A stretch of 64,000 nucleotides of DNA from Laetmonice hystrix (Eukaryota), in assembly GCA_965235115.1 (NCBI GenBank), contig OZ249448.1:23684001-23748000 (forward strand), written 5' to 3'. The position numbers were made by a program, and so were the translations under genes. This document shows, piece after piece, positions 1 to 11,000 of the stretch; position 1 is the first letter of the stretch, and the number at the start of each line of letters is the position of its first letter. The notes under the pieces are model-generated. The model did no database searches. It had not been told where the DNA came from and saw only the letters and a program-made list of their open reading frames with translations.

Positions 1-1220
1 AAGTACAAACCGGCGAGGGCCACCGAAACGTTAACCACAGACCACTTTACTCAACTCGGGCATCGCAACTGCGACCTGTCCCGCCTACAAATGGACAAAG
101 GTCATATAAAAGGTCAACCTTTTGAGGATGAGATAAATTCTCCAGACTTCAATGTAGACTCGGAAGTCTTTTCGATTTAACATGTCTTGTCTTGTGCATG
201 CTCTCCCGAAGGTGACCTTGGAAGTGTAGGATCCGGAGGGAGAATGTGGAAGGGGTTCCACCCTCCTTTAAAATATGTTAATGCTATTTCTTTCTAGCCC
301 ATTAAATAAACAATTTGTATAAATAAATTCACTAAATTCGTTGTGCATCTTCGCACTTATCAACATTATCTCAAATGACCAGATCCCCATTAAAAGTATG
401 AACTTCTCCATTAAAATGAGTTTGGATATAGGGAAAACGGTAACATGCCATGACTTTTAACGCCACGGTCATCCTACTCCATTATCCTCGGATTCCAGAG
501 AGCTTAGCTCTCCAATCAGTTCATCATTGCTTCATATCATTACCCAAAGTATAACTATTACTTTGTTAGTGTTCATCAGGTCAACTAGTCTGTTAAACTC
601 AAAGAAAAAAGCAGCCAGAGCATTACAATGTTACCACCAAACTTTTGTTTAGTTAGGCTCGGTTTGTTATGTAAATGTAGTTTGTATACTAGCCCCCCAC
701 CTAGGTTTACCTCTGGGGAAGGTTAAACGCGATGCAGGGAATAAACCCTCGCTTACCTTGATAGGGAGTCTGCCGTGGTTCAGGATTAATTCGTGTTGAG
801 ACAGTTGTGTATTCTTACCTTAATGTCAGCCTTTCAAAGCCCGACCTAGCACCAACTTACTGCTGTCTTTTTTCGTGTAACAGATGTTCTTTCAAAACGC
901 CTTTATCTTTGTTTAAAAAATGTAGCGGTACCCTTCTTCATTTTATATCAGCCAAGACGGCTCCATATTCTCCGTGTCACTCTACAACTGACATTAGAGA
1001 AGGCAAATACATTGACCTTTCTGAAGTTAACTGAGTATTTTGACTTTGCAGACGTACAAGTCTGCCCTTTTCACTCTGTACACTGCGAGTATTCATCACT
1101 GCAGACAAAATTAAATCATTTGCTCTCATTATGTTAACAAAGTGTCTTACTGGTAGGTTATTGACTTTTATTTGAAATTCCCATATTTATGAAAAATGTC
1201 AAATGCCCACTAATTCGCAC

Positions 1221-1316
1221 ACTCATGGTATGATGGCGGGGCAGAGTTGGAAACTCATGGTATGAAGGCGGGGCAGAGTTGGAAACTCATGGTATGATGG
1301 CGGGGCAGAGTTGGAA
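1221..1316. repeat. 32-bp tandem repeat x3
   Basis: Unit actcatggtatgatggcggggcagagttggaa. Confidence 0.9.
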
Positions 1317-1364
1317 AGCCTCGTTAAGCCTGATAAACGCCCAGTGAGTATCCTAGGTGTGTGA

Positions 1365-1612
1365 TTTCTGATTGCAGCTACGTATTGAATGTGCCTTCTG
1401 ATTGCAGCTACGTATTGAGTTGCCTTCTGATTGCAGCTACGTATTGAATGTGCCTTCTGATTGCAGCTACGTATTGAATGTGCTTTCTGATTGCAGCTAC
1501 GTATTGAATGTGCCTTCTGATTGCAGCTACGTATTGAATGTGCTTTCTGATTGCAGCTACGTATTGAGTGTGCCTTCTGATTACAGCTACGTATTGAGTG
1601 TGCCTGATTGCA
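1365..1612. repeat. 30-bp minisatellite x~8
   Basis: Unit gtgccttctgattgcagctacgtattgaat; explains ORF 1402..1722. Confidence 0.92.
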
Positions 1613-3119
1613 GGTATTATTGTCTATGTACAGAGGAGGGACACATTCTCAATCACTCTGTATGTATTCTCACGCTATCAGCCACATGTATACACTCGTT
1701 GTATAGATCTTGCCTAGCGTAGGTGGTCTTCCCCGCGTACTCCAGTTTCCACCACCAGTAGAACTGACCACGAATAGACCCTGGCTGTAGGGGAAGCGTA
1801 AAATCTCAATCCATAACGGAATCCCCTCACTGTCCCTCAGCATAATCGATATTTCAGTACTTTGACATTTTTTGTGCAATCATTGATATGAGCAAAATAT
1901 GCTCGGCATTCAGTCCAATGTAGGCATCGAAAATCTCCGCTCCAAGTTCAATATAAATTAAGTAGTAAATCGAAGGTGCATTGTTTCAACTTGAACGACA
2001 AAATAAACACAGTGTAGACCTATCTATGTCTCTACTTTGAACCTTTACTATAAATTATATCGAACATAAGTGAACGATACGTAAATCGGTGAATATCTAC
2101 CACTACCGTGCAGCAATGAGCGCGTTTGGTGGTGCATGAGCGAACCCTGTCTCAGTTCAGCGATAAGAAACGCCTTTAGTTCCGATTCCTCCCACCAGGT
2201 GGCCTTGCTGCCGACCTTCTCGAAACGATCTGGCAAAAAGGCCAGAAAACCGTGACATGCATGCTTCCGTTTGGCGCTCAAAAGCTGTACAATGGGAACT
2301 TATCGTTCAACAAAAACAAAACAAAAAAGTCTAAAAAATATTCGATAAGATACTGCTTCAAAATATACACGTGAAATGTCAAGGACAATCATACTAAAAT
2401 ATGCTTAGGTCGTAAAATGTGCCTTACCCCCCCCCCCCCCCCGGAAAAAAGCCGTCATGTCGAAAAGGCTCACGGAAGAAAATGTAGTTGGACAAGTAGA
2501 GAAAGCGAGTTGGCGATGGTGGGACTCGCCACCGCTTGGTCACATCTATATGCGGTGAAAATTCGATGTCAAACCAATTTAGTCTTGGAATATTCACCAA
2601 TGGGAGAAATTATAGCATATTTTGGCCACTATGAAAAGTAGCATATATGCTTATATAGCGCCTTATCAGATTAAGTATATTAAACTCATCTAATGTTAGA
2701 TGTAAAAAAACCCGTGGCTTTAATTGTTATGTCGACACAGTGTGAGTTTATAGAGACAGAGTCACTGCACGAAGGTCAAATTTCCATATTAACTTTGTGA
2801 AAATTCCCCCCAATTCGGATGTTAAGAGAAATGGTATGGTGCAGAGGATGTTCACGCTCACCGCCCACCTCAAACGACTACACACTACCATCCCCCACAA
2901 ACGACATCCTCTCGGCTCCCAACGGCGCCACTAACCAGGAGTTTTAGAATAAATCAAACCACATTACTGCATCAAGAAAATTCTCTGGTCAAATCGGTTT
3001 TCCATTTTCCTTTTTTTCAAAGGCGGGGTACGTCCGAAGAGGAATCTCGATTTGGTGGTCAACGTTGGAAACAATAAGAGAAGGCACGTGTAACGTTACC
3101 GGTCACGGGGTCACCCTAC

Positions 3120-3229
3120 CTGTTGTACATAAGTATATCAGGGTTCCAGATCTCCTTAGAGGGGAGACGAATACTGTGAACACCCCCGTACTCTGATTCG
3201 TTCCAAGTCATCTTGTAGTCTGCCCACTC
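3120..3229 (-). CDS. nAChR subunit, exon 4 variant d
   Basis: ccttactgcag|GAG, 110 nt, donor AACAG|GTAGGG. Translates EWADYKMTWNESEYGGVHSIRLPSKEIWNPDILMYN(S). Confidence 0.93.
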
Positions 3230-3268
3230 CTGCAGTAAGGAATCACATGGGTCAGGACAGACGCCTAC

Positions 3269-3378
3269 CTGTTATACATAAGAATATCTGGGTTCCAGAT
3301 CATTTTCGACGGAAGTCGTATACTATGTATGTCTTCGTATTCCGACTCGTTCCAGCCCAGCTTGTAGTCCTTCCATTC
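3269..3378 (-). CDS. nAChR subunit, exon 4 variant c
   Basis: cttacttgcag|GAA, 110 nt, donor AACAG|GTAGGC. Translates EWKDYKLGWNESEYEDIHSIRLPSKMIWNPDILMYN(S). Confidence 0.92.
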
Positions 3379-3415
3379 CTGCAAGTAAGCATGTCTCAGT
3401 TTGGATCGAGCCTAC

Positions 3416-3525
3416 CTGTTGTACATGAGTATATCGGGTGTCCACACCAGTGTGGATGGCAGCCGTATACTATGCACGCCAGCGAACTCTGACTCGTCCC
3501 ATCCAAGTTTGTAGTCCTTCCATTC
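3416..3525 (-). CDS. nAChR subunit, exon 4 variant b
   Basis: cttggttgcag|GAA, 110 nt, donor AACAG|GTAGGC. Translates EWKDYKLGWDESEFAGVHSIRLPSTLVWTPDILMYN(S). Confidence 0.92.
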
Positions 3526-3575
3526 CTGCAACCAAGCACACGCACAGGGGGCTCAGTACACATCCCAACCCCTAC

Positions 3576-3685
3576 CTGTTGTACATAAGTATATCCGGTG
3601 TCCATACTAACGTCGAAGGCAGCCGAACGCTGCCTACGTCACCGTATTCCGTTTCGTTCCATTTCAACTTGTAATCCGTCCAGAT
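3576..3685 (-). CDS. nAChR subunit, exon 4 variant a
   Basis: Long pyrimidine tract ...gttttgtcgtttttag|ATC, 110 nt, phase 0 to 2, donor AACAG|GTAGGG. Translates IWTDYKLKWNETEYGDVGSVRLPSTLVWTPDILMYN(S), with the loop A WxPDxxxYN motif. Confidence 0.93.
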
Positions 3686-5116
3686 CTAAAAACGACAAAA
3701 CACGGTGAAACGGGCAGACGACAAAAGTAAAGCCCATTCGGCACTTTCCGTACGCCGACCTCCACACGCCCCGGGTCAATGGGACCCCCACTTCGGCTCT
3801 GGTTGAGAAGATACATTGTGTAAAGGGCTTATCAATTAAACTATGCGATTTCTGCTCATCTACATTGGCCAGCCGAGAGGCAAAACGAACTGAGAGCAAA
3901 GGAAGTATCTAGACATGGGTGGGCTCGTGTGGAACTCAGTGACGTCACATTAAACACCAGCATGGAGTCGATGGACTGAGAGCAAAACCTAATTTTGCCA
4001 CAGAATTAAAGTTGTCATAGATAAATGAGATCTGTGGGGTTAAATGTCAACCGACTAAAGGAATAAAGGAATTAGTCTACATATATAGCGAAAACATAGT
4101 ATGCCATGCACTGCAAAGAAACTACTGGAGATAAATGGTTAGCTTGGGCATGTATGTACTAGGTAGGGGTTGGGCGCAATGTTAACATTTGAAAACAATA
4201 GGCCTATTCATAATCATACAGTTATCAACAGTAATAAACTTTCAAATTCAGTAGGTCATGAAGAGGAAGTTAGACTTGATTCTGTCACAAAAATTGGCGA
4301 TCTCTTCTTCGCGATTTCTCTGTTACATTTTAAGTCTGCTGCACAGTAGGACAAGCTATGGTAAACACCTGTTTACGGGCACAAGTTTGGCGAAAAGCAA
4401 GCGAATCCGACTTTTAGTAAACAGGAAAAGTAACGTGGTGAGGACAAACCTTTTTGTGACAGTTCTCGTGGGCTTTAGAGTTTTACTGATACAAGACAAA
4501 TATTTTTCTCAATGATATATTTAAACGGTTTTCCTATTGATTTAGAGAGGAATGATTTGGCAGATTGCTGAGAATGTCAGGAGATCACAATACATAACCT
4601 GGTATCACATGTATCACATCATTTCATGTATGGCATTCGAGTGAAACTTTTGAGGATATCAGTTTTGTTCAGTCTTCAATGAGTTCAAATGGAATCTCGA
4701 CCACAAGCCCGATACAACTGACCCTGTATTAACCACACACAAAACACACAATATCAACGTTTTTCTTCCTGTTTCGTTGTAGTCCTGCCACAATGTGCTC
4801 ATGTAATCTATATAAATATGCAGTTGACCACACCCAAGCTGTTTTATTATAACGGTTAACAGACTACGTGGTGACAGAGAATACTAGATAGACTGTTAGA
4901 TGTTAGATGATAACACTTTGAGAGGTTCGAAGTGGTAAAACTGATACCGACAGTTAAATAAATAGACTGTTAGACGCATTCAGCATTATTATAATACCTT
5001 AACCATGTTAGACACAGATCGTTTTAGAAATTGTAACAGTGTACATTATGACGATCGATCTAATTCAACAATTTACTTTTCTTGGCCACTCACTAATAAT
5101 TCCTGCGTATACTCAC

Positions 5117-5161
5117 GTAGTTCAGCCACATGTTCGTATGCAGCATCTCGTTCTTTTCATC
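5117..5161 (-). CDS. nAChR subunit, exon 3 (45 nt, single copy; contains loop D Trp)
   Basis: catttccag|GATGAAAAGAACGAGATGCTGCATACGAACATGTGGCTGAACTAC|gtgagt translates to DEKNEMLHTNMWLNY. This is the canonical 45-nt phase 0-0 nAChR exon (DEKNQ..TN.WL). Confidence 0.95.
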
Positions 5162-6779
5162 CTGGAAATGCAAGGCAGGAATGCAACAGAATATAATTTA
5201 GTATATACCATGCCTAATAAAAATCAAAGTTTTGTTCACCTTTGATGAGGTGCTACCATGGAACGTGAAGAATATGTACATACAAGTCTCTCTATAATCG
5301 TTACCACTTCTTTTTAGTTTCTTTCATTGATGACATAGTCCTTCATGCGAATGGTTTCATTTGGAATATTGAAACGAAATAAACATGATTCACTAAAAGA
5401 GAAAATTTTAAATTTTAAGAAGCCTTAGGAATTAAAAAAAATAAGAGGGAAGTACCCACCCAAAATATGCATGTATATATAGAGATGCACATCTTACTTT
5501 TGCCATTAGTAATTTCAAACGTCTCACAATGATAGACATAAAATACGGTTCATCAACACTCGCATTTACTGCGCCTTTTAGATTTATGCAATATTTCAAA
5601 AGCTCCCTTCGGAAGTCTATCGTCGAAAAGTAAATAATCCTATCGCATACTTATATAGAATGAAAGAATTGATGAATTACTTCCACTCTGTCACAGAGAG
5701 GTTTAACGGTGGTGATTCCAATCGATAGTTTACACAGAAAATGAGAAGGGCACACTGAATGGCCTCAATACTCGCACACATGATACCAATCGTTTAGAAC
5801 AAACTGAAAGTCTCTCCTCTCTTTACACGACCATCCGAGTGGCATACATTATTCAGCTCTGTCATGTTCATTTGCTCTTTTACTTCAAAGGCCCCGCTGG
5901 CATTACATATACACTAGGATCACACAGAAAACAGCGCATATTTGTGGCCGAGGAATAATATCACCGACTCATCTCAGTCTACAAAATGGATTATTCGAAT
6001 TTAAGCGACAGCGACTGGGGCTGCCTCTAGTGGACACCGTGCCAAACACTGCCATGGCAGAATACGGATCGTCCCGGGACCTGAGGCCTTGGCAGAATGA
6101 ATGAATTATTCTCTTGGCGTTAATTGTGCTAAAACAAATGGTCGTACAATTGTCAAGATCCTAATTTCATTAAAGGCTGCCCATTGAGCGGCGATCATTC
6201 GCCGACATTGTCGTGAATTTTAATGAAATCCTTGTTGTTTTTATCCATGGCTGATCGTGAAAAGCGCCTTATTATTTTTGTTTGTTAAACATAACGCACT
6301 TTTATTCATGATGCTGAGGCGAATACTTAATACTGAACAGTTGCCCTTGGGAAAATTAGTAATATGGAATAACAACAATGAAATCAGTTGATTTTGTTGG
6401 ATTATACTTTCACAAATGTTGCATGACACACAGAATTCTTTGTATCGTTTACCATTATGATTGACTTCATTGTCACTATGAGTATCATAAAAAATTCAGG
6501 GTTAGCTTCGTGATTAATGGCACCACATTGTCGTTTTAACAAGGAATATTAAGCCTATCACTTTTTAAAAATCTCAAATATTCACTTGTAACCATTTATT
6601 TTCTATAAACTTATATACTCGTCAAGCTGATAGGTTTACGAATAAATAAAATCACTTCCACGATAAGAGATGGAAACGTTGTTGATGCGGCAATCAGTAC
6701 AAAAGGCAATAAGTAGTTAACACAAGAGAAGAGGGGGGTTGTTTAGGGGTGTCTGGCATACAGTTAGTAAGGCGCCTAC

Positions 6780-6925
6780 CACGTCAATGATTTGCTGAAG
6801 AGCGATACCAAATTTGACCTCAATGGAATCCATCTCCTTGGGAACGGGACGCGAGAGTCGGTTGTAGTTTCGTCTGCCGAATATGTCATTTATGAGTCTC
6901 TCCTCGTGCGGACCCTGCAGGCTCT
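6780..6925 (-). CDS. nAChR subunit, exon 2 variant b (partial CDS)
   Basis: Pyrimidine tract, CACTAAC/GACTAAT branch-like motifs, acceptor ttcacag|AG, 146 nt, phase 1 to 0, donor GTG|GTAGGC. Translates (E)SLQGPHEERLINDIFGRRNYNRLSRPVPKEMDSIEVKFGIALQQIIDV. Confidence 0.93.
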
Positions 6926-7499
6926 CTGTGAACCACCATATTAGTCGCGTTAGTGCCAGACAGAGAGAAAACACAGCAAGACGTCAAGACAATGCAGACG
7001 TTCACCACGCACACATCATCAAACACAAAACAAGGGTGGCAGGTCCAGCAGCATCAGCAGCAACCGGGCAGCGTGTTAGTGTGGCAACCACGCCCATCTG
7101 TTATCTGTAGAGAACGCGTAATCAGGTAAGCAAGAGGGATTAAGGGAGCCGCCGTTGTCTCCGAAGAGCGATTAGACAGTTTGCAGCAATTGCGACTGTC
7201 CCTCGCCTGTCACCTACGATTACCGCTAGGCAGTGCTCGAGGTCAATAGGCCGTGAAGACACTCGTGCACGCCAAAGGGCGAAGGTGGTTTTGTTTTTGG
7301 GGTCTTTCAATACATCTAAAGTCACCAACGTCCAGATATCGATAGAAAGACGGAACTGAATGTAATGGCGGGAGGGTCCGTCCAATGTACACGTATCGAC
7401 ATGTTTCCTTGTCTAATTTTTGGGTGATTCAGAACTTTTTGGTGATTGCAGTAGGATTTCGGATAGGGTAAAGTGCAGGGAGACAAAAGCGGCTTACCC

Positions 7500-7680
7500 T
7501 TAACGACCAACAATAGTTAAACGTTTATTAAGGTTGTTAACGATATTGTTAATTTACCTGGCCGTGAATGGAAGACCTTCGGTTAATGGGATCGTTATTA
7601 ATCAAAGACTTCTTGTTAACGTTAACGTTGTTGAAGTTAACGATATCGTTAACAACCAGACCGTAGTAAAACAGGCCCTG
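7500..7680. mobile_element. Remnant of a non-autonomous DNA element (Harbinger/MITE-like) with an internal inverted repeat, in the intron between exons 2a and 2b
   Basis: ggttgttaacgatattgttaa (~7532) is the reverse complement, with 1 mismatch, of ttaacgatatcgttaacaacc (~7637). It ends in a TIR-like acaggccctg; the partner TIR was not found. Confidence 0.4.
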
Positions 7681-7759
7681 GATGGGTAAATATATTAAAC
7701 AAACGGTAATGGGACAAGAATCTCTTGGCCTCGGTGATTCTTAAATAAGGTAAGGTGGC

Positions 7760-7812
7760 AATGGTATGGTCACAATGGTATGGGCAAAATGGTATGGGCA
7801 AAATGGTATGGT
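7760..7812. repeat. 14-bp tandem repeat x~4
   Basis: Unit aatggtatgggcaa. Confidence 0.8.
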
Positions 7813-7939
7813 TACAAGGTCGTGTGTTCCCCCACAGCCTCGCATGCTCTCGGGTGGCAATGGATAAATCTCGCGAACCGCGAGAGGGAGAAACCCAGAG
7901 TGTTTTGCTGCGTCATTGCACCGGAAGCCAACGTCTTAC

Positions 7940-8079
7940 CACGTCGATGATTTGCTGAAGGGAAATGCCGAAGTTAACCTCGACGGCGTCCGATTCCTTT
8001 TCTACTGGTCGTGCTAACTTATTGTAGCGACTGAAGATATCCTCTATAAGCCGTTCCTCGTGCTGTCCTGCTCGGGCGC
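7940..8079 (-). CDS. nAChR subunit (alpha7-like group), exon 2 variant a (partial CDS)
   Basis: Acceptor ...ttgcccacacag|GC, 140 nt, phase 1 to 0, donor GTG|GTAAGA. Translates (G)ARAGQHEERLIEDIFSRYNKLARPVEKESDAVEVNFGISLQQIIDV, the nAChR N-terminal helix to beta1 (compare Drosophila alpha6 GPHEKRLL...RPV.NESEPLEVKFGLTLQQIIDV). Confidence 0.93.
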
Positions 8080-11000
8080 CTGTGTGGGCAAACGGTGAGA
8101 AATACCAAGAACACAATCGATTAAACAAAAGGTGTGGTGAATATAGGCCTATATTATTTCACTAAAAAGGCAGTGACATTGATTAAAACTGTCTACTTTA
8201 TCATTTATGTGGACCAAACTCAGTGTGATATTTTATTTATCTATCTGATCCCTTGGGAAGATATCAGCTAAGCAGTGGCGTACCCAGAAACTGGACCCAG
8301 GGGGGTGCTGGAAATAACCTTTAAAATTTTTTGGGGGGTAAATTGAGGGGGTGCTTGAGCACCCCAAGCACCCCCTGAGACTACGAATCGGACAAATGGG
8401 TTTCCTCCATCGACCCTTAATCCGCATGTATCAAGTGCATGCCATGTGAGGTCCCCATTCATCGTGGTATCAAACTTTAACTTTTAAAGTAGCAGTATTG
8501 ATGCCACCATCCCTGTGCCTGTACGGCATGGCATCCTGAACACTTTAATAGATGTAGCACGCATGCTGAAATAAAACCTTACAACGGAAGTCGATTAGAC
8601 ATACCAATGCAGCATGCAACATGTGGGATTTTTACTGTCTACGAACATGTCATAATATTAGTCACATATAACAAAGCGAAGACATGTTATAAATTCAAAG
8701 ATATCAAGCCATCACAGCCTCACAGGAAAGATGAACAATTTTCTCAGCATTATCGTTTTCAGAAACTGAAGGTCAACAGTCATTTGTAGCTGTAACCATG
8801 GAAACGACCTTCGTTATACACAAAACGTAAATGTATCCGATATCAGCAAAGTCGAGCAATTAACAAGCTGTCTGATGCACACCTACATAACTGATATAAA
8901 ATTCCGTTTTTAACGAAACTTCGGACCGTCTTGAGTTTATTTTGATGACTGCACTGTAGGCGTGTCGCTAAACTCATCAAATAGCTGTGTGGGCACAGAG
9001 TTTGAGTGATTACTGCCCACGCCAAGGTAAATAGCGTGATCATAGGGTGATTCCCTGAATAATACATATCTTACAGACGGCTAAAGCTATTTGTTGCAAC
9101 GGAGGATGCAGCAAAGAGCCTATTTTAAACACTTCACAGATGATCGATTTTACAAACATTCAAACTGTGCTTCATATATTAAATTTTCCCCAGTTAATCG
9201 CAATTTATACACCAGATATGGTTAAACCGTTGTCCCAAACCCCCGTCCGAACAATTCCCGCTGAACACATCCTGTAAATGATGACTCACCGCTAGGAGTC
9301 GCCACCAGTCCGTCCCAGATTGAATCCAGTAAATCTAATTTTACATTATTCGCACGTAATCGACCAACGGGGGAGTATCGTTGAGAGAAGTTGGGAGAGA
9401 ACCGCCATATTGAAACTCCCGGTCTCATTAGAGCGGTAATTGCCTTACAATTACCGCTCAATCGGAGATCTGCGTTTCAGGGAAATACCGCACTCAATGA
9501 AGGAAATACCGCACTTAATGTAGGCACGGCAGGTACCGCGGCAGTCGCCTACTCCCCGGCGGAAATTGTGCTCAGTGGTCAGGTTTCGGTCAAATCATTG
9601 CTGCCAGTGTGTGCAGTGACTAATTTCTTGTGTACGGATATAAACGGGGAGGAGGTAAGAAGGGATGGAGTCGGCTAAAGGATGTTAGATGGATATGGTT
9701 TTAATTTTTGTATTTATTGCATTTTTGTTGATATACGTTATACATAGATGCAAGTCAGCAGGAATGTGTTTACATAATGCTGCCCCTTAAAGTCTAACAC
9801 AGACATCAAAATTAATATGAAATTTAGTGCCAGATCTTGATGATACATGTAATTTGTTGTTGTTTAACCTAAAGGAGCGGTTATTGTACAAGAACTTGAA
9901 CTGTATGTAAGCCAATTCCCCTAATGACGTCATCAGGGGCAATGTTAAAGAATAGGCGGGAGTGAGACTGTAATGTGGCGCGCGATTCTAATTGTCAATT
10001 TTTTTCTAAATTGAGAGAACTTCTCAGAAAACCTATCAGGGACACATCTAGAACTCAAAGTGATCTATCTAGATCAGTAAAGTTACCCATGTGATGTCAG
10101 TTGGACTTTAAGAATCGTGTAAGAATGATCCTGAGCGCAACCTTTGGCTGGTCGTAAGAGGCGAGGAATGGGGCGAGGGCTGGTTGGGGGAGTGGTCGGG
10201 TGTCGGATTGCAGAATTATCTGTGTGGCACAGATTGGTCCTTCCAGCACCATTTCTCTCATTGACCCTCCCCAGTGCTCCACAACAGGGTCGTCAAATGC
10301 TGGTGTGTCCGGTCATGTTTGTGTGTCTGGACATATAAATGTACACTTGCCATGTGTTCGGAAATCGAAAGGGATCGCCTCGCGATGGTGTTTCATGACT
10401 AAATATAAGTTTTATTGTTTTGTGATTTGTGAGCTACAATCTGCACAATCACTACATCAGTCATGGTGCTGGCATGCCCACAAACATCCATAGAGCTCCC
10501 CAGTACCACGGTACTTCACCCCATCCCAACCGACTGCACCAAGACAACAAACTTCCCAGCACAAATCGACTTAATGTTAAGCCACTAAGATTTGAACACA
10601 GTGAATTGTAGCTGGTATGTCGTGCCGGTGGCCGACTGAATAGCGCGCATAATCGGCCACGCATCATTGAGGCCCGGTCAATAAAGTCCGCGAGCTTCCG
10701 GAAGATTGTACCGAATAGCTCTGTCGTAACTTCGATCTCGACCTCGCTCCATCCCCACACCCCAACCCCCACCTACACACACCCAACCCCAACACCCAAC
10801 ATTTTCTGAAAACTGTGCTTGAAAGTAGTTCAGACATGTTGTTCATTCCGAGAGAGCGCCAGGAGAAAAAAGATCCAATATTTCAGATTTTCTTGCGGTA
10901 TGGCCTGAGCATGCAGAAAACGGTGGTCAAGGGATCGGGCACTACAGACCCCAATATCCAATAGCTTGAAATGACAAGATTTTAATTATCCTTCAAATGG

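Follow-up and report, generated by a model that had tools for sequence, protein, structure and literature searches.

Introduction

The mutually exclusive exons of insect nicotinic acetylcholine receptors (nAChRs), which involve loop D, the Cys-loop and the second transmembrane segment (TM2), alter pharmacology and insecticide sensitivity. In the insect alpha6 gene, exons 3a/3b and 8a/8b/8c are of this type, and six of the six combinations were found in Tribolium by reverse transcription PCR (RT-PCR) (PMC2064938). The alternative exons 4 and 4' of insect alpha4 hold the Cys-loop, and exons 3 and 6 of RDL and GluCl occur in two or three alternatives (PMC2064938). In the present study, we analysed a window of 64,000 nucleotides from Laetmonice hystrix (NCBI GenBank assembly GCA_965235115.1, contig OZ249448.1, positions 23,684,001 to 23,748,000; G000:C18:23684001-23748000 in our numbering), the minus strand of which carries a predicted alpha7-like nAChR alpha-subunit gene with two copies of exon 2, one exon 3 and four copies of exon 4. 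We regard it as probable that the two exons were multiplied by tandem duplication and have been kept as alternative coding exons of a single gene, and that each mRNA most likely contains one exon 2 and one exon 4, by which up to 8 subunits could be produced. Positions are given in window coordinates unless stated otherwise.

This gene shares with insect alpha6 (Dalpha6, Tcas-alpha6) the alpha7-like type of the subunit, insect alpha6 proteins being among the named matches to its relatives, and also the probable origin of the alternative exons by tandem duplication; the combinatorial use was seen by RT-PCR in Tribolium and is predicted for the gene in the window. The multiplied exons are different, because the insect duplications concern exon 3 (45 nt, loop D) and the TM2 exon, while here exon 3 is single, exon 2 is present twice and exon 4 four times. 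The 4/4' pair of insect alpha4 and the alternatives of RDL/GluCl are likewise mutually exclusive tandem pairs or triplets in the extracellular domain of a Cys-loop receptor, but the alpha4 pair corresponds to exon 5 of the present gene, and in alpha4 and RDL/GluCl at most three alternatives per cluster have been reported, against four for exon 4 here. An earlier note on this DNA had ascribed an exon 3a/3b pair to insect alpha4, which is in fact the exon 4/4' pair (PMC2064938).

A direct annotated precedent for an alternative exon 4 is the alpha7-like gene of the nemertean Lineus longissimus, in whose NCBI isoforms X1-X6 (XP_064652926 and others), all equal in length, two 110-nt copies of exon 4 lying 52 nt apart are annotated as alternatives. 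It is thus the same 110-nt exon that has tandem copies in both animals, and the nemertean gene also has alternative pairs of exons 3 and 6. However, it belongs to a different orthologous group (58% identity), its exon 2 is single, and its two exon 4 copies are only 47% identical to each other; it is a database annotation for which no describing paper was found. The searchable literature contained no account of an alternative exon 2 or 4 in nicotinic receptors, or of such exons in annelids, and a survey of the lophotrochozoan nAChR expansion does not treat alternative exons (PMC6896357). The earlier note, which knew of no report of the arrangement, is thus borne out by the searchable literature, but the annotation of Lineus longissimus already lists a swap between two copies of the same exon.

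Results

Each of the seven exons of the window is bounded by AG/GT splice sites and has an open frame, and the phases run from 1 to 0 in exon 2, from 0 to 0 in exon 3 and from 0 to 2 in exon 4 (Table 1). The earlier note had described these exons at the same positions with the same sites, frames and phases; only the length of exon 2b, which is 146 nt and not 140, had to be corrected. When one exon 2 and one exon 4 are combined, the frame remains open in 8 of 8 combinations, with 460 or 462 codons and the same stop, while all 15 of the other combinations that were tested, having none, both, two, three or four copies, lead to a premature stop. The exon 4 array was resolved by a repeat finder into four units of about 150 nt.

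As the earlier note had proposed, the copies are variant exons of one gene and not parts of tandem genes, since single exons 5-9 follow downstream and no second exon 3 or exons 5-9 accompany the copies. A tblastn search with all exon peptides over 84 kb (-20 to +64 kb) revealed neither another exon 3 nor other exons 5-9 of the kind that would betray separate paralogues. Across the 627-Mb genome the exon 4 copies are mutual best matches, with 72-75% amino acid identity among themselves against at most 57% to about 70 other exon-4-like matches, and no second tandem cluster of exon 4 was found in it. The nearest paralogue of the same genome, on C1, has 53% identity in the last exon and matched each exon once only. 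Contigs of three DNA runs, which were derived from short reads of the same sample as the assembly, cross the whole exon array without differences, and therefore the array is not an assembly slip.

Table 1. Exons, spacers and introns of the nAChR gene, with the orthologous exons of contig L007 (p, Fisher test of nonsynonymous against synonymous changes between the two species).
Feature	Position	Strand	Length and phase	Splice sites and remarks	Orthologue in L007
Exon 2a	7940..8079	-	140 nt, 1->0	acceptor cacag, donor gtaaga; open frame	L007:2548-2687, equal length, 83% amino acid identity, p 1e-11
Exon 2b	6780..6925	-	146 nt, 1->0	acceptor cacag, donor gtaggc; alternative to 2a	L007:3552-3697, 146 nt, p 2e-16
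Exon 3	5117..5161	-	45 nt, 0->0	AG/GT; single copy	
Exon 4a	3576..3685	-	110 nt, 0->2	ag and gtagg	L007:5890-5999, by position, p 9e-11
Exon 4b	3416..3525	-	110 nt, 0->2	ag and gtagg	L007:6063-6172, 86% amino acid identity, p 6e-9
Exon 4c	3269..3378	-	110 nt, 0->2	ag and gtagg	L007:6214-6323, 86% amino acid identity, p 3e-16
Exon 4d	3120..3229	-	110 nt, 0->2	ag and gtagg	L007:6377-6486, by position, p 2e-7
Spacer 4a/4b	3526..3575	-	50 nt	5' splice site of 4a, branch-point-like CTGAG (A at +23), pyrimidine tract of 4b	
Spacer 4b/4c	3379..3415	-	37 nt	CTGAG motif, A at +20	
Spacer 4c/4d	3230..3268	-	39 nt	CTGAC motif, A at +17	
Intron 2a/2b	6926..7939	-	1014 nt	14-nt tandem repeat at 7744-7817	no alignment
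Intron 4	1..3119 in window	-		continues to single exon 5, which begins 7 nt past the first base of the window	
Exon 5	G000:C18 23683993-23683740	-		single, constant; Pfam/tblastn, fitted to splice sites	
Exon 6	G000:C18 23683103-23682909	-		single, constant; Pfam/tblastn, fitted to splice sites	
Exon 7	G000:C18 23682150-23682064	-		single, constant; Pfam/tblastn, fitted to splice sites	
Exon 8	G000:C18 23681605-23681496	-		single, constant; Pfam/tblastn, fitted to splice sites	
Exon 9	G000:C18 23678692-23678255	-		single, constant; Pfam/tblastn, fitted to splice sites	

For comparison, we used L007, a 1.97-Mb contig of another species (ENA ERZ25767047) that was located by the exon 5 peptide and holds the orthologous gene. 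Its layout is identical: two exon 2 (140 and 146 nt), one exon 3 (45 nt) and four exon 4 (110 nt each), all bounded by AG/GT. In the constant exons, which are 90-100% identical in amino acids, the proportions of synonymous (pS) and nonsynonymous (pN) differences are 0.75 and 0.05; the synonymous sites are saturated and the two species very distant. By blastn, the two loci align in their exons only, apart from one 37-nt block in intron 8. Despite this divergence, nonsynonymous changes lie far below synonymous ones in each of the seven exons (Fisher p 2e-7 to 2e-16), as in exon 2a with a pS of 0.75 against a pN of 0.10. A similar pattern was obtained among the copies within the genome, pS being 0.73-1.0 and pN 0.11-0.20 between the exon 4 paralogues, in which 17-20 of about 33 differences are at third codon positions, and 0.91 and 0.20 between exons 2a and 2b, which have 70% amino acid identity. 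Of the listed heterozygous sites, four fall in exons, three of them in 2a and the fourth in exon 3, and none changes an amino acid. Every copy is under purifying selection, as expected of a functional coding exon. Conservation in related genomes and the ratio of the two kinds of change among the copies had both been suggested as checks by the earlier note.

The pairs of 4c (support 88/85) and of 2a were recovered in the peptide trees, and the orthology of the other copies rests on position, identity and signature residues. By position, orthology is clear for 4b, 4c and 2a. The signature YGDV of 4a and the signature DYKM of 4d are common to both species, and the orthologue of 4b likewise reads WDES and has no glycosylation sequon. 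The 37-nt block of intron 8 (L004:6569-6605, window -3431 to -3395, against L007:13230-13265) has 86% identity and may be a regulatory element or a micro-exon.

The predicted product is an alpha7-like nAChR alpha subunit, which may form an acetylcholine-gated cation channel. In one reading frame, the exon 4 copies and exon 5 match PF02931 (Neur_chan_LBD) and exons 6, 7 and 9 match PF02932 (Neur_chan_memb); every exon 4 copy alone matches Neur_chan_LBD at positions ~53-95 with E values from 9e-10 to 8e-8, the latter for 4a. The best solved relatives of exon 5 are alpha7 chains (E 7e-24), and the named relatives carry the annotations alpha7-like, alpha6 or acr-16. In the spliced model, the Cys-loop C-x13-C reads CTINIRWFPFDDQLC and the vicinal cysteines of loop C, which mark alpha subunits, lie in YECCPEPY. 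The aromatic box is complete, with the Trp of loop D (NMWLNY), the Tyr of loop A (LMYNS), which is present in 4 of 4 exon 4 copies, the Trp of loop B (GSWTYDG) and the two Tyr of loop C. The loop D Trp is contained in the exon 3 peptide, DEKNEMLHTNMWLNY, which is identical in L007, in two further contigs (L010 and L013) and in Ridgeia (L011).

Both multiplied exons encode parts of the extracellular domain. In solved alpha2 and alpha4 chains, exon 2 (2b was aligned) corresponds to the N-terminal helix and beta1, and 2b retains the GPHEE motif that is found in insect alpha6 and other outgroups. Exon 4 (4b was aligned) corresponds to residues ~59-93 of solved alpha7 chains, which we take to be the beta2-beta3 loop equivalent to the main immunogenic region (MIR), beta3, and loop A as far as its conserved Tyr. 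No exon 4 copy departs from the ligand-contacting Tyr or the WxPD motif, and the variable positions are in the MIR-type loop and in the segment preceding WxPD. Exon 4b, which reads WDES, is the only copy without an N-x-S/T glycosylation sequon. Differences between the isoforms would be confined to the apex of the extracellular domain, where those with 4b would have no N-glycan site. In muscle and alpha7 receptor structures, the N-terminal helix and the MIR or MIR-equivalent loop pack together at the subunit apex, and for this reason both exon clusters may influence the same surface.

The named relatives of the gene are annelids, with identities of 72% for Ridgeia and Lamellibrachia, 66% for Hirudo and about 60% for Owenia. 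The exon 2 pair, with intact acceptors and donors, was found in six species, namely those of the window and of L007, L008, L010 and L013, and Ridgeia piscesae (L011). In all six the second copy retains the outgroup-like GP(H/Y/Q)EE motif, while the first copy is derived at this motif in four (window, L007, L008 and L010), in which the second copy also has YNR..RPV. L008, L010, L013 and L011 have only one exon 4 per gene body, which places the quadruplication after the origin of the exon 2 pair and before the split between the species of the window and of L007. In Ridgeia piscesae (JAODUO010000514.1), the upstream exon 2 copy (L011:2376-2519) is unannotated, has intact AG/GT and precedes the annotated start of KAK2179088.1 by 1.6 kb; the N-terminus annotated for this protein (MVTELCELTGYCLAET) is unlike a signal peptide.

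In several relatives, other exons are present in more than one copy. The orthologous gene at L008:11526-19499 (ENA ERZ25069859), with its exon 2 pair and single exon 4, carries exon 6 (loop C and the first transmembrane segment; about 195 nt, a multiple of 3) in a tandem array of six or more copies, all with A/GTAAG donors and no other exons between them, and the locus ends before the array does. At L010:11838-15091 (ENA ERZ26052287), the orthologous gene has two exon 7 (TM2) and two exon 8 (the third transmembrane segment, TM3) besides the exon 2 pair, and exons 5 and 6 are each interrupted by an extra intron. At L006:590-8980 (ENA ERZ25070786), a last exon that has 88% identity and is split by an intron is preceded by five or more exon-8-like (TM3) copies, whose identity to exon 8 of the window gene is 44-69%; the contig does not reach the exons further upstream. 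At L013:3420-18082 (ENA ERZ25069296, a contig of 2x coverage), a single set of two exon 2 and one exon 3 precedes exons 4-9 in three tandem blocks. Every block ends in a terminal exon of its own, and one has a frameshift in exon 6 that is possibly an assembly error. The blocks may represent either alternative 3' cassettes with exons 1-3 in common or partial duplicates of the gene.

Further observations were made along the gene. In exon 2a, a second in-frame AG acceptor lies 12 nt downstream of the first (window 8067-8079; cacag, then GCGCCCGAGCAG, then GAC), with the same motif in L007; it might serve as an alternative 3' splice site close to the region of signal-peptide cleavage. The donor region of exon 8 is duplicated in tandem just past the exon (45 nt; L004:7410-7495, window -2590 to -2505), which creates a second in-frame GTATGT donor, the use of which would add 15 residues after TM3. 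The stretch 8272-8319 is a very high-copy repeat, with a summed contig depth of 55,000-89,000 versus about 50 elsewhere, and between 7500 and 7683 the contig depth is raised 2-10 fold.

Discussion

Alternative exons packed so closely that the branch point crowds the preceding 5' splice site are known from alpha-tropomyosin, in whose exon 2/3 pair the second exon has its branch point too close to the 5' splice site of the first. That pair was tested experimentally, whereas the present gene has four copies, whose exclusion we infer from sequence. The spacers between the exon 4 copies are of 50, 37 and 39 nt here and of 63, 41 and 53 nt in L007, and each contains a GTAGG donor, a branch-point-like CTGAG or CTGAC 17-23 nt further on, a short pyrimidine tract and the next acceptor. 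Such short spacers suggest steric exclusion: a branch point that follows the preceding 5' splice site by no more than 17-23 nt should keep adjacent exon 4 copies from being joined. In addition, transcripts with none or with at least two copies of either exon would be frameshifted, would reach a premature stop and would be removed by nonsense-mediated decay (NMD), a filter that would also cover the non-adjacent exon 4 copies and the exon 2 pair, which are 1014 nt apart. Steric hindrance and mRNA surveillance are established ways of enforcing mutual exclusion (PMC3585155).

The gene had also been called Dscam-like. It is similar to Dscam1 in having several tandem clusters of alternative exons in one gene, with combinatorial isoforms that are predicted here, but Dscam1 has thousands of isoforms against 8, and its docking/selector complementarity and conserved intronic elements have no counterpart in our data. 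When the spacers were compared with introns 3 and 4 by RNAduplex, here and in L007, docking/selector pairing showed no excess over shuffled spacers and no common site, although this is a weak test, and blastn against L007 found no conserved intronic block near the cluster. The label is therefore not supported, and short spacers together with the frame and NMD fit better than a Dscam-type mechanism.

Several points weigh against the reading of the two clusters as mutually exclusive exons of one gene with 8 products. Searches with the 5-kb region and with the last exon found four runs of one sample, none of which is on record as RNA, and no run covers exons 2-4 as RNA; a small run of unstated kind (X4) contains the last exon but does not reach exons 2-4, where its depth is zero. 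No convincing candidate for exon 1 emerged from a scan for ATG-started, hydrophobic exons of phase 1 upstream of 2a and between 2a and 2b, and it is assumed that a first exon is common to 2a and 2b. The orthology of 4d is ambiguous by identity alone, and the exon 2 and exon 4 peptide trees are mostly unresolved, with only the 4c and 2a pairs recovered. One spacer in L007 is 63 nt long and may be spliceable, so that steric exclusion may be incomplete; non-adjacent copies such as 4a and 4c would be kept apart only by frame and NMD or by other regulators. Apart from these points, transcripts from related annelids use either type of exon 2 in different species, none of which is a species shown to have the array, and the transcript-derived protein P0320 (84% identical) runs from exon 3 through a single exon 4 to exon 5. 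An exact search of metagenome contigs with the exon 3 end of the related transcript L012 gave no match, not even to L012.

The alternative that survives best is that 2a and 2b are chosen by alternative promoters, each exon 2 having its own exon 1, with the exon 4 cluster still mutually exclusive. It agrees with the missing exon 1, the intron between 2a and 2b is roomy enough for a promoter and a first exon, and signal-peptide exons are too poorly conserved to be revealed by alignment. On the other hand, the crude scan detected no ATG-started hydrophobic exon of phase 1 between 2a and 2b either here or in L007, both copies retain the acceptor AG in the same phase in six species, as expected of internal exons, and the siboglinid transcript P0429 joins a normal signal peptide to an exon 2 of the second-copy type. 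In Ridgeia, a siboglinid signal peptide gave only a non-significant match upstream of both exon 2 copies. We therefore consider separate first exons unlikely, though clearly the least improbable of the rivals.

Less probable still is that some copies are silent relics of past duplications, or pseudo-exons, and that the gene makes only one or two isoforms. This would agree with the lack of transcript data for the species and with 4a, the most diverged copy, which has a pN of 0.19 to its counterpart in L007. However, every copy has retained its exact length, its AG/GT, its open frame and a pN far below pS, while the introns can no longer be aligned and the synonymous sites are saturated, and an unused 110-nt exon would not survive such divergence. 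That the clusters are an assembly artefact or parts of separate tandem paralogous genes deserves next to no credence, for although this genome has a massive expansion of nAChR genes, which often lie in tandem (>150 Pfam hits), and L013 has its three tandem exon 4-9 blocks, the array is crossed by contigs of three DNA runs, recurs with the same layout in the independent assembly of L007, and has neither a second exon 3 or 5-9 nearby nor extra downstream exons between its copies.

The reading of one gene with two clusters of alternative coding exons is thus the one that we prefer, and the relatives allow it to be seen in a wider frame. As a tentative proposal, for which we would put the chances somewhat short of even, the annelid alpha7-like locus could be a hotspot at which different lineages have multiplied different exons as alternative modules, so that the cell-specific diversity of subunits comes from one gene rather than a family, and the part of the channel that is tuned differs between lineages. 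Exons 3 and 6 appear as alternative isoforms in entries of Owenia and Tubulanus. The Capitella teleta model CAPTEDRAFT_221893 (P0256, 657 aa) reads two exon 3 and two exon 6 in series, both lengths being multiples of 3, and it is probably two mutually exclusive exon clusters mis-annotated as one long protein. Serial gene models of this kind inflate reports of 'duplicated domains' in spiralian receptor surveys.

Conclusion

Four alternatives in one cluster are more than in any case of a Cys-loop receptor in the searchable literature, and the locus is a small natural system in which the exclusion of splicing by very short spacers can be tested. The predicted isoforms would differ in the N-terminal helix and the MIR-equivalent loop, which are relevant to assembly, glycosylation and surface recognition rather than to the pore. 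The conservation of the arrangement across deeply diverged annelids argues that these isoforms matter.

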